Below, one piece after another: positions 14,483 to 21,853 of a DNA stretch of 64,000 nucleotides. A program made the translations under genes and the position numbers. Position 1 is the first letter of the stretch. Each line of letters begins with the position of its first letter. The stretch covers positions 1,426,001 through 1,490,000 of the forward strand of contig CAJINV010000008.1 in the NCBI GenBank assembly GCA_905178155.1, read 5' to 3'. This stretch comes from Amoebophrya sp. A120 (Eukaryota > Protista > Dinoflagellata). The notes under the pieces were generated by a model. That model did no database searches. It was not told where the DNA came from and saw only the letters and a program-made list of their open reading frames with translations.

Positions 14483-15758
14483 GCATATTCTTCACCGTTC
14501 AGTCTCGTGGCTTCTGCTTCTGTCTCGTCAGGTAAAAAAATATGAGTTCTAACACGTCGACAATGCTAGAGCTAATCGTCACATGTTGATCTGTAGATGT
14601 TGTACCAGTAGTACTTCAAGGAGCGCTGTAACAACACTGACTAGTACTTCACCTTGAGTACAACCAAAATAAACAAAATGAAATTAATACTAGATGGCAC
14701 TTTCGAAATGAAATACTTGTCCTCCGAGGACTTAAATTAGAGTGCTTAAACTGCTAATCGTTCAAGCAGCTTAGGCAGTTCCTGCCAAGTTATTAAGGCA
14801 GAAAACCATCGGAGAAATTGCACGGCGGGACAACAAACTTTTAGCATGACTCTTCTGGTCTAACTGGAGCAGATTCATGGCTCAGGCTACAACTGGAGGT
14901 ACGCAGACGCACTATGTATTATGCTCTATCAGGTAGACCAGCCTAGCCCTAGGCGCAGCTAAGTAGTAAGTCAGAAAACTCTGCGTGAACGCCACCAGGA
15001 TGGATAATGTAGTACAAAAATCTAAAGCGACAAGCCAGACGCTTATGGAATCCTAGATTTAATTTTAAGCTCTCTTCATCGTAATTTCCGATTTTCGTTG
15101 TAGATGTAGTTTCAATACCTGTAGTTTCTGTTGTTTTCACTTTTCTGTTTACGTGTGTACACTGACTGTAGGATGGACAAGCACAACCCGACTGTATGAT
15201 GTAACTGTACAAATCAATGTGAATTTGGTCGCACTCGAAGACTATGACTAACTCTAACTTGTTTAACTTTAACAACTTACAATAATATTTATTGGTACTA
15301 CGACCATGATCCACCGAGTTCTGAAGATCTGTAAGATGAGGCGCGCAGCTTGGTGTACGGGACGAAGAACGAAGGGAAAAAACTGAAATATGAAGAACCT
15401 TAGGAGCTGCGAGCTGCCAGCATGCGCGTGACATCTAGTTTGATCGGAAATATTCGTTCTTGTTGTACACTGTAGACGAACTCCAAACACAAAAAAGTCA
15501 TAGATAATATCTTTGCCACTGCGGTAGGACTGTTGTCGCATTTAATATTCTCGGAGTGTTCACACACAGAAAGAAACAGTTCGACGAAAGTAGTCAGCAT
15601 TGGCACAGCGCTAAGCGCGAGTAAGTATTTTCTTTTTCGAATATCAAACGCGAGCCCCGCCCAGCACTTGAGACAAACGTAGGCGTTGCTGAATGTAAAG
15701 CTGCCCGTGACCTGCGACTTTTTGCAGGTTCTTGTGATATCTTAATCCTGAGAGGGCC

Positions 15759-18700
15759 ATGGTACTGCGAATCTACCTCGACGGCGCAAATGTGGGTCGG
15801 TCCCGCACCTTGCAAGATGTCGATCGTGCACGTAGCGAGCAAGGAGGGCCTCCTCCCCGTATCGATCCGAAGCAGCTTTGGATTGCTTGCAGCAGCGCCT
15901 TTGAATATTTCGGAGGTCAAGACAGCGGTCGAAACATGGATCGACGAGTCCGCCTAGCAACACCCCTTTCCAGGTTTACTTCCATCGTACAGAAACCGGG
16001 AAGATCCAGCCGAAAAATCGAAGTGGCCTTACGGATCGTTTTCAGCGAAAATACGTTTCGCCGTTTAGCGCAGTTACGCCGCCCAAAAGTGCATAAGTCC
16101 AAGCCAGTCAGCTTTGCTTCTGAAAGTGCAATGTGCGCTGCCAGGTGCTTCTGCGTCTGCATTATGGTTGTAATACCAAACTTGAACTCCTGATGCCTTT
16201 TTCTCGTGCGTAGTACCCGTACACGACCGGCAGCGTAGTAGAAGTAGGATCATCTACATAAACAAAGCGCACTTGCCACTCCCACTATTTTCTCTGGGGG
16301 CGTGCTCAAGAGAGTTTGCACAGGCACCATGCTATTGCTAACAACAGGAGGACCAGGACATATGACTGTTGCACGTTTGATGTTTGTCTTTCCAATATTC
16401 GGTTAACGACGACAATAAATACTGGCGAAAGCTCGTCGCCGCAGACCAGGGTCGGTTGTTTTTGAAAGCCCCAAACCGAGAGGACGACGATGAGTGGCTT
16501 CTATCTCGTGCCGAAGAAGATTGGGAGCGGGGAGACACCGTAGCCATCATCACCGCTGACAATTACGACAAGTGGAAAACGGACCACCCTCACGTAGTGC
16601 CGCGGTGCCTCATGAAGTACTGTTACGACGACCACGAGCACCGTTTCACCCTGAAACTCAGGGACGTCGACGAGCGTCTCGTATCATTGACGAACCAACG
16701 TTTTGAACGCTCGGCTTCTGATTTTGCGTGGTCGTCTTTGGCTTCAAAGATGATTATACAGACAAAAATTGTAAGTCACCGCTGGGGCACGCTGAGGACG
16801 CAATCTGTAAAGCCTGCATTGCTGTTGTTTTCCATGTGGTCAGCCGGAACCGGCATACTACTTTACTTACACTTAGTCTCGCAACAGGAAGAAAAAGAAC
16901 AGATGAGCATGATTGAAGGTCGCATCATTTATAGTGCAGTTTTCTTCGTGTTCGTTTGATACCTGGACCGCGAATTTCATGAAGATGGGCGGCGAGTGGA
17001 CGACGAGAGCAATGCGGCGCGGTCGAACAGCCGCGCGTCGGTTGGTCGACGAGTGGACCCAGACGACAGCAATGCGGCGCGGTCGAGCAGCCGCGACAAT
17101 ACCCTATATACTATACGGCAAGAAATGCGATTGACGTATGGCCCGATTTCTACTAGTAAAATCTTTACTAGTAACAAAAATCCGCAAACTCTTACTAGTA
17201 AAAAACGCTACTAGTAAATTTAACGGGACAGGCGAGCAAAAATTCTACTAGTAGAACAGGGGAGGGCTACTAGTAGAGCGCGTACTAGTAGAGCGCGTAC
17301 TAGTAGAGCGCGTACTAGTAGAGCGCGTACTAGTAGAAAACTGGGCAAAAGCCAAAGCGAGGAGCGACCCTGCGACCGCCGACGCCTCTGTGGGCGCCCG
17401 GTTGCTCTGAAACAAGCGCGCCCAGAGCGCTTCTTGTCCCGCGAAACAGGCTTGCCTTGCCCCTGGCGGAGAAACTCGCAGTGGGCAGTCCGTCGCCATG
17501 CTCTCTGGCGGTGCGAGGGGCGGCGCGCGGCGCTTTGCAAGCGGGAGGGGGGTCCGGGACGCGCGACTGCTGGCCATTGGGGGTCCGGGAGGGCGCTGCG
17601 CCTGGTGTTGCCTTCCTGTGCCTCGCGGGCCGGGGCCGGCTCCCCCGTGGTGTGGGTATTCCTGCCTTCCACGAAGGCAGGCCGCCGCTTTTCTCCAGCC
17701 CCGCTCGCTTCTCATGTGCACCGTGCGCACTCCCGTCGCGGGGGGTCGGGCCGCTGCGCATGGTTGGCCCGTCCCTTTGCGTAAGTAGGGCTTCTTACGC
17801 CGGCGCCACTTTCCCGTGGGTTTCAGCAACATGCACATAGTAGCTCACTCATCTTAAGGGGTGCTCGCAAAAGAATTGCAAACCGCCCAGAAGGCTCGCC
17901 GCCCACCCTCTGTCGAGGGGGGGGCCCGAGGGCGTGAGGCTCCATTGGTCGCCGGCGCCCAGGGGCACACGCGCTTGGACGCTTATCGCCTCCTGCCTCT
18001 TCCCGGCGACTGAGGACGCAGCCTTCCTACTGGGAAATCGGGCCCATCGTTTTCTTGTCTACTCCATACCTCTCCGGCGGTCGCGGAGCGACCGCCCGTG
18101 CTAGATACGACAAGAGCAACGCGGCGCGGTCGAACAGCCGCGCGTCGGTTGGTCGCCGCTCTTACTAAGGGGAAAAGTTCAAGAATAAGAATTTCGACAA
18201 AAAAATCATCACTAGCCCTGGTGCAATCCCAGAGCCAGGCGTCCGATTCCAGGTTTGGCGGCAGGGTGCCGGAAGTCCGAGTGGCGGTATGGTACGGCAG
18301 CAGGTCCCGTCGGTCCAGGTAGCGGAGCATCCCGTCCTCGACTCCGCAGACGAAGCTGTCTCCGATAGCATTTGTTTCTTTGAAAACCAAAAAAAAAACT
18401 GCAGGTCCTCGGCGTCTTACCTTCTCCTCCCGGAATAAAGATACTAATCTCCACACACTAAACTAGTTAAGTTTAGCATTCTACTTGAGCTAGTTTCCTC
18501 AGCATAAATAGCCTTCATTGTTCAAAAAAAATAGACGTAGGTGTTGGCTTTGGCGGTCTGTTGGCTGGTGTACATGAGAGACCCAACCACGAAGCGGCGT
18601 CTTTTCTCCCGGCACCAAGTACGCCACGATGTCCACATGTTGCACCAGGTGGTGCAACAAAACTACGTGAAGGTCTATGTGCTGCTCCCCGCCAAAAGCT

Positions 18701-21700
18701 GTCCGGATTCGAGGTCTTGGCGAACGTCGTGTGACAGGTCACGACACCGGCCTCCAACGTCCTGGATGTGGTCGGTTCGCCTGTGCTGGCATAAAAAATT
18801 GATGGCTTTGATTCTTTACGGAGGGTGATGAGTAGGTCTTATCTAGCTAGTTTAGTGTGTGGAGATTAGTACTTTATTGCGTCTGGTATCCCGTCGCGGC
18901 ACAGGTAAGACCTTCTGCAGGAGGAGCGTCATGGCAAGTCGTTTCTGAAAGCAGCTCGGTTTAATTTCCTGCGCGACCTTTGATGTCCACCTTTTCTTGT
19001 TGTGTATTTTTCAAGAATGAGATGAGCAGCATTTGCAAACAAAACAAAACACAGGTACACTGAACTTACCGCGAGGGGTCGAGTGTTGATTTTTTTGTCA
19101 GTTTTCTTATTCTTGAACTTTTCCCCTTAGTAGCTCTCAGGGTCACGACGACAGCAACGCGGCGCGGTCGAGCAGCCGCGCGTCGGTTGGTCGCCGCTCT
19201 CAGGTACCAAGTGCAAAAATGTCTGGGTCTGGGAGGATGGAACTTGTCATGCTGAATCTGAATCATGCAAGAAATCTGGGTTGCGTGATTACCAACAGCC
19301 GTCGTTTTTTACCAAGTTGAGAGGAAATTTCTCATGCAGGATAGACATGCTAGAGATCTCACAGAGTTTGTCATCCTAGGTGCTGCATTCCAGACCTCAT
19401 GAGTCATAGAAAGCCTGCATCTTCCAGACTCAACCAACCAACCAAACCTGGCAATCTTCCAGACCCAGACAGTTTTACAGTTGATATCAGGTGTATGACT
19501 GCGTCAACTTACCCAAACTCAACTTACCCAAAAACTTTATTAGCGATTTTTCATAGCTAGAAAGCATGCTGATTTGTAATGCCTAAAAGTAGTAGCTATG
19601 GTTAGCCTTAGCTAGATAGAACTTCATATAGCTAATTAAGACCGTTTTCACGCGTGTGTAGAACCCGCAACCTCCGCTACCAACGATCACGGATTCCCTT
19701 CCGCTGCCAACGATCGCGGAGGCTGAGCTGCGTTGCCACCGCGTTGCGACACCATTCACAAGCTTCATACCTTGGCTGGATTTATACACGAAGTGATAGC
19801 ATGCGACAGGTATTGAGATATTCTATCATTTATGCCATTGAATTGAAAAAAATCCGAGGCATCTTTTTTGTCTAATCACGTTGGTAGGGTGATTTTTTGT
19901 CAATCCAAAACCTAGCATCGGGGAGGGGGATCACTCATCCCCCTGGTCCATGCCTAAAAGTATACTGCTTCCCCGATGCTATGCCCCATGCAAAAGCAAT
20001 ATAATCTGATTTGATAGCATCAACTCGAAGGAGTTTTATCATGAGACACAGCATCGTTGGGGAGGGGATCCGTGATCGTTGGTAGCGGAGGTTGCGCCTT
20101 CTACACACGCCGGAAAACGTCCTTTTCGAAATAGCTATTTACCTCAACTAGTAAGTGTAGACTGAGCGGCGCCGGATAGTAGGTTCGGACTCTAAGTAGC
20201 TAATTAAAGTGGTTAGTTAAATTTTTGGGTAAGTTGAGTTTGGGTAAGTTGACGCAGGCATAAGGTGGGGCGTGTGGACCACGACGACAGCAACGCGGCG
20301 CGGTCGAACAGCCGCGCGTCGGTTGGTCGCCGCTCTCAGGGGCGTTCGGGCGCGTCGCGTCGGCAAGCACAACATCATCGTCGCGGGTCCAGTGGTCGTT
20401 CAGGAAGTCGAAGTCGCGTTGCTCGCAAGTACAGCACACGACGAGATGGTCCATCTCGTACAAGGGTGAAAAACGTATTCGCTTTCAAAATTCAAATTTT
20501 TTTGAAGCCCCCTTGCAGCATCCGGCCCGACTGTCCTCATCCGCGTCACCCGGCTCAGTGGCCCCACAAGCGGCTCCGGATTCTCCGACCTATCAATTCC
20601 TTTTTTTTGAGATGTAGTCTGATAGTGATGAATGAGAATGCGAATGAAAGTATGTAGCTTGTCGCGGTGATAGCTAGTGTAAAGTAGATAGCATTTGAGA
20701 CGTTTTGTGACAGATGTCGGCAGCAGGTAGACGTTCATCAGCGACAGGAGCCTCCCAGCAATGCCATCCGGTCTGGGCACCAGACTGGTGCCCAAAATGC
20801 CGCTCAAGGCGATACACAGCTCCGGACCAGCAGCACTCCGGGCAATGGACTATGCAAAAAAACGTCTTCAAATGCGAGCTCAAATTTACACTACCTATCA
20901 CCGCGACAAGCTAGCTAGATAATAAGACTACTCAAGTGACATCATCAACATACTCCAGCAATTCAGGTAACGAAAAAAGGTCCCGCGACTCACCTGCCCG
21001 ACGCCTTCCAGTTCAACGAGGCCACCGACGGGGTCCTATCTGGACCCACCCTCAAGGGGGGCAGAAAAAAATTTGATTTTTGAAAGCGAATACGTTTTTC
21101 ATCGCTGTATCTCGAAGCTCCTCCCGTTCGGCATCTTCATCTGGACGATCTTCGGGTGCTTACTCTCGGGCGGGCCGTCGCCGAAATGATAGAAGCAGTT
21201 CCGAGGAGGGCTCCCCCTCCGGGTCGGATTCGGAATCATCAAGAAGATCTTCACGAGGACGCTCTTCACGCGAAGGCAGCCGTCGCGAAGGCCGCGACAT
21301 CATGTCCTCCTCTCGGAGGAAGAAGAGTGACACCGAAGAAGCAGGAGCATCGGTGTCTTCAGACACGAGCCCCGCCCACGTTAGAGAACTCACGAAACAG
21401 ATGGGGCGACTCGACATACGAGATGCCGGGCAGGCGGGGGGACAAGGGCGGACCGATGCAGCTGGAAATGACAATTACAACAGGAGCCAATCCGAAGATC
21501 AGTCTTCTTTCGAGCGAGAGCAACGCGATGGACGGCCGGCCGAGAAGCCAAAAAAGGAACTATCGAGCGCCGCGCAGACGCGGTCTCCCGCTGTTTTTCG
21601 ACGTTTCCAACGTGTCGATCAGGGGGCACGACGAAGCAGCTATGCAAAGAATGACGCTGGTGATCAAAAAAGTTCCACGAGCCCCGGTGATCTTCTGCAC

Positions 21701-21853
21701 GAAGACCACGAGGACGCAGGAGGTCCTCCAGGCTCCAAAAATACTCTCCCTGCTCAAAAAGTTGACAAGGCAGGTTTGGCGCGCGGGCTTTTCCCGAAAG
21801 CGCCACCGTCGGCGTACAATAGTCGAGACCGCGACTTCAGGCAGCGGACCTAA
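15759..21853 (+). CDS. NYN/PIN-domain (Zc3h12a/Regnase-like) ribonuclease with Arg/Ser-rich repeat tail, ~562 aa, split by seven TIR elements
   Basis: IYLDGANVG (cf. VIDGSNVA), EDDDEWLLSRA, IITADNYDKW, LMKY motifs. Removing 415+285+1014+975+287+774+656 nt gives a 1689-nt open frame ending at TAA 21853. Confidence 0.8.
15988..16397. mobile_element. Degenerate TIR introner element
   Basis: TAC...ATA ends, weak IR, flanks catcg/ttcgg; element+5 gives FTSI|VNDD; no AG acceptor lies between the in-frame stop at 16378 and the exon start. Confidence 0.5.
16682..16961. mobile_element. Degenerate TIR introner element
   Basis: IR tatca..acgaac; flanks tctcg/cctgg; 285-nt removal deletes a stop codon (ERL|DREFHED). 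Confidence 0.7.
17099..18107. mobile_element. ~1-kb insertion with TACTAGTA array and GC-rich body
   Basis: Flanked by direct repeat cgaca(a); ends in ATA; removal of 1014 nt keeps frame; TIR weak. Confidence 0.65.
17151..17337. repeat. Ten copies of palindrome TACTAGTA, including a 15-bp tandem (tactagtagagcgcg)x4+
   Basis: Copies at 17151, 17166, 17193, 17209, 17246, 17268, 17283, 17298, 17313, 17328. Confidence 0.95.
18163..19132. mobile_element. Large TIR element (970 bp) with nested internal IR
   Basis: ~50-bp TIR tactaaggggaaaagttcaagaataagaa; TSD gctct; inner IR ~18434-18469 / 18844-18878. Confidence 0.95.
19205..19486. mobile_element. TIR introner element, family C (282 bp)
   Basis: TIR ..aaaaatgtctgggtctgg..; TSD tcagg. 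Confidence 0.93.
19494..20262. mobile_element. Large TIR element (769 bp) with nested internal IRs
   Basis: ~45-bp TIR tatgactgcgtcaacttacccaaactcaacttacccaaaaa; TSD aggtg; inner ~50-bp IR ~19643-19694 / 20068-20119. Confidence 0.95.
20459..21109. mobile_element. Large TIR element (651 bp) with nested internal IRs
   Basis: ~45-bp TIR tacaagggtgaaaaacgtattcgctttcaaaa; TSD tctcg; inner IR 20655-20683 / 20885-20913; 656-nt removal joins ORF 20265 to ORF 21080. Confidence 0.95.

Follow-up and report, generated by a model that had tools for sequence, protein, structure and literature searches.

More than 60% of the introns of the dinoflagellate Amoebophrya sp. A120 are non-canonical, and a subset of these are "introner elements" that carry inverted repeats and direct repeats of 3-5 nt; U1 small nuclear RNA (snRNA) was not detected in the genome, and the mechanism of splicing is unknown (PMC7789003, Farhat et al. 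2021). Diverse introners that are transposons with terminal inverted repeats (TIRs) have been reported in A120, in some cases at tens per gene (PMC12130899, Gozashti et al. 2025). We analyzed a 64,000-nt stretch of this genome (the window; contig C8:1426001-1490000), and within it one gene on the plus strand, which runs from an ATG at 15759 to a TAA at 21853 and is broken by seven intervening sequences. (The genome that we searched has 115.5 Mb in 401 contigs; positions given without a contig are those of the window.) Our best explanation, which we consider probable, is that this is an expressed A120 gene for a divergent NYN-type nuclease with an arginine/serine (R/S)-rich tail, and that it is split by two non-canonical introns and by five transposons that act as introns. 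The gene, its type of intron and the splicing puzzle of A120 are already published, and the locus opens no new question; what is new is a member of the NYN nucleases that is invisible to Pfam, in a known setting.

Across 15759-21853, six-frame translation gives only fragments of open reading frames, as had been noticed in a model's reading of the bare letters (the sequence-only reading), which went on to call the gene hidden. It is not hidden, because public annotation holds its product, though without a function: CAD7957596.1 (GSA120T00006386001.1; P0001 in our searches) is a 563-amino-acid (aa) "unnamed protein product" in both NCBI nr and EukProt. That the gene is intact was borne out. It is real and nuclear, it is transcribed and spliced, and orthologues occur in Amoebophrya sp. 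A25 and on two ENA/Logan contigs (P0003 and P0005).

Three models of the gene keep the frame open. With the supported boundaries (model 1), the introns are 16073-16400, 16681-16965, 17113-18072, 18163-19137, 19205-19491, 19494-20267 and 20459-21114; removing these 4265 nt leaves a coding sequence (CDS) of 1830 nt that encodes 609 aa and is free of internal stops. (This joined 609-aa model was used for the frame check and for comparison with P0001; searches were run exon by exon and then with P0001, which the exon 2 search had returned.) Model 2 is P0001 itself, which we matched letter for letter with five introns (16073-16400, 16681-16965, 17113-18072, 18163-20336 and 20459-21114; CDS of 1692 nt). 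Its large intron, 18163-20336, takes in elements 4-6 (the intervening sequences are numbered from the 5' end) together with two exons for 20-aa repeats, and 46 residues are lost. P0001 thereby passes directly from repeat 3 into repeat 5, and because these repeats are identical over 48 nt (18115-18162 and 20289-20336), the joint 18162>20337 can slide by 48 nt. This may reflect a genuine isoform in which exons are skipped, or it may come from the mapping of reads within repeats; the contigs described below are compatible with repeats 4-5 being included, with their being skipped, or with both. Model 3 is that of the sequence-only reading (introns 15988-16402, 16681-16965, 17099-18112, 18163-19137, 19205-19491, 19494-20267 and 20459-21114), and we reproduced its numbers exactly: 4406 nt removed and a frame of 1689 nt (562 aa) with no internal stops. 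Five of its seven boundaries stand. An RNA contig and the public protein correct the other two, those of intron 1 (16073-16400) and of element 3 (17113/18072).

The evidence for splicing comes from sequencing-run contigs aligned to 15600-21500. We compared run X1, which is RNA by guess only, with a DNA run, X5, which covers this whole range at ~45x. X1 behaves like cDNA: its depth is 18-46 in exons and 0-12 in introns. X1 contigs contain the joints 16072>16401 (328 nt skipped, in a 697-nt contig of depth 26.6 that also covers 15663-16072), 16680>16966 (285 nt skipped, depth 7.7) and 20452>21109 (656 nt skipped, with six ambiguous letters, ATCTCG), and none of these joints was found in any sequence of X5 at its ~45x coverage. 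Another X1 contig ends at 17112 plus 12 letters that equal 18073-18084, which implies a joint 17112>18073. RNA-like contigs thus confirm three joints, and the 12 letters of this loose end support a fourth, which is likewise absent from X5. The X1 contig over 21109-21500 has a depth of 43. Unspliced X1 contigs were also present, at a depth of 2.9 for intron 1 and of 10 for intron 2 (16652-16995). Two raw RNA runs (X8 and X9) had zero reads on this range, so they provide no test.

At intron 2, unspliced contigs make up about half of the RNA-like depth (10, versus 7.7 spliced). The form that retains it reaches a stop at 16957 and encodes 290 aa, which is the nuclease domain without the R/S-rich tail.

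We searched for homologues with exon 2 (16402-16680) as the query against 1.84 billion representative proteins and obtained four proteins at E <= 0.001. These include P0001 (563 aa, 100% identity across the exon), its counterpart from Amoebophrya sp. A25 (P0002, 485 aa, 66% identity) and P0003 (380 aa, 47% identity). We did not count the fourth, P0004 (2224 aa, E = 4.5e-05), as a homologue: the match is weak, the protein has Kelch repeats, and no aligned stretch was listed. Across the domain, the orthologues are 52-54% identical and share a conserved start, which reads MVLR(I/V)Y(L/V)D in three of them. A120 also has a paralogue, P0006 (621 aa, L002:1231-3096, which is C1:16314974-16316839), whose N-terminal domain is encoded without introns and which has its own A25 orthologue (P0007). 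Nine residues are invariant in six sequences from the two paralogous groups: D8, N11, R14, D133, D135, D158, N159, Y160 and D161. A homologue search with the paralogue returned its A25 orthologue alone, with no bridge to annotated NYN proteins, and a scan of JGI metagenomes with the family alignment found no relative.

These data also bear on whether the locus might be a decaying pseudogene or an artefact of annotation, with a frame that is just a by-product of choosing boundaries that keep it open. The boundaries of elements 4-6 were indeed chosen by rule and not from RNA, three in-frame models exist (562, 563 and 609 aa), and intron 2 is so often retained. Against this, spliced X1 contigs reach a depth of 23-27, the orthologues are similar across the domain and from the start codon onwards, the motif residues do not vary in either paralogous group, and the domain is modelled with confidence. 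We therefore regard decay or artefact as extremely unlikely.

The motifs that had drawn attention to the N-terminal region (DGAN, DDD and ADNY) are all present, as are five DDSNAARSNSRASVGRR-type repeats and an R/S-rich tail. The sequence-only reading took the motifs to match the Zc3h12a type of NYN ribonuclease, and at the level of fold this is what structure prediction gave. We modelled P0001 with AlphaFold2 from a 5-sequence alignment. The predicted local distance difference test score (pLDDT) was 80-93 over most of residues 1-175, and the tail was disordered (pLDDT < 50). When the model was compared with 48,161 representative chains from the PDB using VIA-align, only ZC3H12C (Z = 11.1) and PRORP1 (Z = 9.2) reached Z >= 8. 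In a closer comparison, Z was 11.3-11.7 to ZC3H12A (also known as MCPIP1 or Regnase-1), ZC3H12B and ZC3H12C, with a root-mean-square deviation of 3.3 Å over 138-143 residues and 15-17% identity; PRORP proteins gave Z of 9.0-10.8, and Rae1/YacP, MARF1 and ExoIX dropped to ~7. All of the top matches from Foldseek were NYN nucleases, with PRORP first both for the model of P0001 and for that of the paralogue. A model of the paralogue's domain alone (pLDDT 77, predicted template modelling score 0.73) matched PRORP, ZC3H12, KHNYN and MCPIP1 at a probability of 1.0. Of 30 feature neighbours in the ESM Atlas, 25 have PF11977 (template modelling score 0.57).

The predicted fold is superposable on the nuclease domain of ZC3H12, as far as predicted models go. 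ZC3H12/Regnase gives the best superposition, which takes in ~140 of 157 residues, and the motifs, all invariant in the family, come in the same order, with D-G-x-N following strand 1, then an acidic cluster that precedes a helix, and finally D-N-Y-D, which follows the last strand of the core. In the model, the invariant acidic residues lie after the strands at 2-8, 125-128 and 151-155. We take this arrangement of invariant D and N residues after core strands to be a putative metal site of the NYN type, as in Regnase-1, whose catalytic residues are D141, N144, D225/D226, D244 and D248. The aligned ranges start with residue 1 of the model at residue 134 of the chain, which would put D8 on D141 of Regnase, and the spacing from D158 to D161 is one residue shorter than in Regnase-1. 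Unlike ZC3H12/Regnase, the A120 protein has an insert of ~70 residues between strands 1 and 2, and it lacks the CCCH finger, the UBA domain and the C-terminal domain of Regnase; its tail is disordered and R/S-rich. We found no CCCH finger pattern in the protein and no match to a zinc-finger family of Pfam. (The only cysteines nearby are C174 and C179; H183 and H185 come after them, and the orthologues have Q or V in place of C179.)

PRORP is the second-best structural match as well as the top match from Foldseek, which raises the question of whether an NYN/PIN-like fold could serve another role here. The protein might be a non-catalytic scaffold that binds RNA, it might process the 5' end of tRNA as PRORP does, or it might be a DNA-flap nuclease similar to FEN or ExoIX. 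For PRORP-like processing speak its Z scores, which nearly equal those of ZC3H12, and its first place for the paralogue; unlike PRORP, the protein has no PPR repeats and no zinc-binding central (linker) domain, P0001 does not match PF16953, and it has no Pfam match at all. (PF16953, which represents PRORP, has no match anywhere in the A120 genome, and control genomes were silent too, so this is not a test.) The 5' nuclease domains of ExoIX, T4 RNase H and Pol I were also matched, at Z of 5.4-7.3, which is clearly below ZC3H12. As for a scaffold, the invariant acidic residues favour catalysis. Overall, we consider these other roles unlikely.

The tail is similar in composition to the tails of the orthologues, with ~19% S, ~17% R and 31-37 RS or SR dipeptides, and the five 20-aa repeats are specific to A120. 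This composition resembles that of SR/RS splicing factors. Unlike SR proteins, this protein has no RNA recognition motif (RRM) or other RNA-binding domain (a Pfam search of P0001 found neither RRM nor UBA), and an R/S-rich composition is not enough to define an SR protein.

Several points weigh against our identification of this gene as an expressed NYN nuclease. The profile searches by which the sequence-only reading had proposed to check it were negative: PF11977 and PF01936 gave no match at E <= 10 to the exons, to full-length P0001, P0002 or P0003, or to the paralogue. NCBIfam gave no NYN match either, and searches of PDB sequences (exon 1, exon 2 and P0001 by phmmer, and a 5-sequence profile) returned nothing relevant. 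Our evidence for the fold consists of predicted models, for which the alignments had just 5-6 sequences, and the catalytic residues of Regnase were equated by their order, by position in the secondary structure and by the aligned ranges, not by residue-level superposition. On the side of expression, X1 and the public annotation are not independent, because they probably come from one project. Finally, the one-by-one removal of elements 4, 5 and 6, and with it the inclusion of repeats 4-5, is set by rule: X1 contigs do not bridge these elements and the public model skips the repeats.

A six-frame search of the whole genome with PF11977 found no match. Elsewhere in the genome, two neighbouring genes on contig C10 (1739059-1742922, minus strand; frames of 679 and 702 aa) have a canonical NYN domain, with PF01936 at 84-91 bits.

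We now turn to the intervening sequences. The sequence-only reading had treated all seven as stacked elements, and for elements 3-7 this stands: they have inverted repeats at both ends, they are able to form a hairpin, they carry 5-bp duplications, they are multi-copy in the genome, and they contain no transposase. These five of the seven are non-autonomous TIR transposons acting as introns, and they are of the "introner element" kind that is already known from the A120 genome. As for their removal from the transcript, RNA shows it for element 7 and, at internal sites, for element 3; the public protein lacks elements 4-6. The ends of elements 3, 4 and 7 are not GT-AG, and for elements 4 and 7 no GT-AG choice of ends is available.

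Elements 4-7 are uniform in kind. Their TIRs are 31-66 nt long with TA...TA termini, and the 5 nt that precede each element are repeated directly after it. Copies of these elements throughout the genome start and stop exactly at the TIR termini. Of 11 copies of elements 4-7 that we checked elsewhere, nine have a 5-bp duplication, each of a different sequence (such as CTGAG for the element 4 family, and CGGGT and TGCAG for the element 7 family), and two (L007 and L013) have none; among the checked copies of elements 5 and 6, the duplication is present in six of seven. The sequence-only reading had removed each intervening sequence by a "+5 rule", that is, the element plus 5 nt. Because the copies carry their own duplications at the ends of their TIRs, we explain this rule as the 5-bp target-site duplication of TIR DNA transposons. 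The rule holds for elements 4-7 (RNA confirms the removal of element plus 5 nt at element 7 alone) and fails for element 3 and for intron 1.

The RNA of element 7 folds back on itself over a long distance with its ends paired (z = -8.2), and the element has a 99% identical copy on contig C12. Copies of elements 6 and 7 that are 99% identical lie on contigs C6, C5 and C12, which suggests recent movement. The element 5 family is very abundant: more than 3500 first-look candidates came from a query that spanned elements 5 and 6, and most of the matches listed were copies of element 5. The summed depth of DNA words reaches 94,000 within element 5, versus ~45 in its flanks.

Element 3 is spliced differently. 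Its CGACA repeat sits at the ends of the element, with none at the splice sites, and the sequence beyond the ends of the intron is common to three other copies (L014, L015 and L016). Splicing inside the element (17113/18072) therefore keeps 54 nt of element and duplication in the mRNA, which encode 18 residues. The splice sites of this family are fixed inside the element, as ACT/ATACGG ... CATACCTC/TCCGG (slashes mark the sites), and are common to the three other copies. The element 3 family seems to bring along splice signals of its own, which are non-canonical (AT..TC). Element 3 also contains four copies of a 15-nt tandem repeat, TACTAGTAGAGCGCG, at 17268-17342, with more motifs that contain CTAGTA down to 17150; beside the tandem repeat is a GC-rich core with long, spurious-looking open reading frames on both strands.

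Elements 5 and 6 are separated by 7 bp, their 5-bp duplications (TCAGG and AGGTG) overlap, and each has a GT..AG choice of ends. Removing them separately would leave a 2-nt micro-exon at 19492-19493, which we rejected because one GT-AG intron, 19204-20264, gives the same mRNA. Recursive splicing, with a zero-length exon, is just as possible.

The insertion sites themselves show a pattern. Four element families inserted at 17094-17098, 18158-18162, 19200-19204 and 19489-19493, which lie in successive 60-nt coding repeats, and elements 4, 5 and 6 are within 7 nt of one offset in the repeat unit. The 60-nt unit holds a palindrome, GCGCGG...CCGCGC, and it may be a hot spot for insertion.

Compared with the introner elements of Amoebophrya (PMC7789003, PMC12130899), the likeness lies in the TIRs of elements 3-7, the direct repeats at the borders of elements 4-7, the multiple copies and the lack of a transposase. 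There is no difference in kind. Locally, elements 4-7 have a uniform 5-bp duplication together with TA...TA termini, the element 3 family is spliced at fixed internal sites, and two adjoining insertions form one GT-AG intron.

Introns 1 and 2 did not prove to be elements. Each is unique in the genome, their border repeats are 1 nt only, and neither forms an end-to-end hairpin (fold z of +1.07 and -1.17). As they are single-copy and have no terminal hairpin, we consider them to be plain non-canonical introns. We rejected a candidate element at 15988-16397, since RNA shows this stretch to be exonic and the orthologues conserve it. The 29 aa that intron 1 of the sequence-only reading deletes are likewise conserved, and in the predicted model they belong to a strand (85-96) and a helix (97-106). 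Within exon 1, 20 nt (16039-16058) are 75% complementary to part of the terminal repeat of element 7 (20471-20490). The match is weak and is probably due to chance, as RNA places these 20 nt in an exon and the peptide that they encode is conserved in the orthologues. The coordinates of all features are listed in Table 1.

Table 1. Features of the A120 nuclease gene, in window coordinates.
Feature	Position	Strand	Evidence
5' untranslated region, minimum extent	15663..15758	+	X1 contig starts at 15663 and runs into CDS
Exon 1: start codon, first half of NYN domain (DGAN: D8, N11)	15759..16072	+	X1 contig; identical to P0001 residues 1-104
Intron 1: 328 nt, GT..TC, single copy, no terminal hairpin	16073..16400	+	X1 joint; fold z +1.07
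Exon 2: second half of NYN domain (EDDD 132-135, ADNYD 157-161)	16401..16680	+	100% to P0001 residues 106-198
Intron 2: 285 nt, GT..TG, single copy, often retained	16681..16965	+	X1 joint; fold z -1.17
Exon 3: coding repeats 1-2 and 14 nt of left end of element 3	16966..17112	+	P0001 holds SSSRDNTLYT
Element 3: repeat family, CGACA duplication at 17094-17098 and 18108-18112	17099..18107	+	At least 20 related genome copies
Intron inside element 3: 960 nt, AT..TC	17113..18072	+	X1 loose end; same joint in P0001
Exon 4: 35 nt of right end of element 3 and coding repeat 3	18073..18162	+	Frame; P0001
Element 4 (18163-19132, TAC...GTA) and one GCTCT copy	18163..19137	+	56-nt TIRs, inner inverted repeat
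Exon 5: coding repeat 4, inferred; not in public model	19138..19203	+	In frame after removal of element + 5
Elements 5 (19205-19486) and 6 (19494-20262) as one GT-AG intron, 1061 nt	19204..20264	+	Inverted repeats, family boundaries
Exon 6: coding repeat 5 and start of R/S-rich tail; public model enters at 20337	20265..20458	+	
Element 7 (20459-21109, TAC...GTA) and TCTCG duplication	20459..21114	+	57-nt TIRs, foldback, RNA joint
Exon 7: R/S-rich disordered tail and stop codon	21115..21853	+	X1 contig; identical to C-terminus of P0001; pLDDT < 50

A nuclease of this type in a gene full of hairpin-forming introns invites the idea, put forward in the sequence-only reading, that the enzyme acts on those introns: an NYN RNase with an R/S-rich tail would recognize the TIR stem-loops of introners and cut or degrade them, so that they are removed or cleared. 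Regnase-type enzymes do cut stem-loop RNAs, and element RNAs such as that of element 7 fold with their ends paired. The prevalence of non-canonical introns, the undetected U1 snRNA and the unknown mechanism of splicing in this genome (PMC7789003) also count in its favour. This protein family has been retained in A120 and in A25, which both have such introns, but this is uninformative because most genes are common to the two. NYN proteins occur widely among eukaryotes without introns of this kind, an endonuclease would not by itself account for the exact ligation of exons, and nothing here links the enzyme to intron removal. We therefore think it very unlikely that the protein cuts or degrades hairpin introns, and we give as little credence to the wider proposal that both of the Amoebophrya-specific NYN proteins (this one and its paralogue on contig C1) are dedicated nucleases for introner hairpins, acting in a non-spliceosomal or assisted removal or in the clearing of introns. 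That the gene's own expression depends on removal of the elements is true of any gene with introns.

We favour a more ordinary role for this divergent NYN nuclease. Residues 1 to ~200 would form a very divergent, metal-dependent nuclease domain of the NYN type, whose predicted fold is closest to ZC3H12/Regnase, and the remaining 360-410 residues are predicted to be a disordered, R/S-rich region with lineage-specific 20-aa repeats. The protein would be an active endoribonuclease in the ordinary turnover or processing of mRNA or other RNA, and its tail may provide contacts to RNA or to proteins.

In summary, our analysis offers a reading, at the level of function, of a public "unnamed protein product" and of its orthologue in A25. 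Because Pfam is blind to this family, structure prediction is needed to annotate the fast-evolving genome of A120. Within a short distance and with support from RNA, the locus also illustrates how transposon-derived introns behave in Amoebophrya, with exact removal of an element plus 5 bp, splicing at internal sites that adds 18 codons, and paired insertions.

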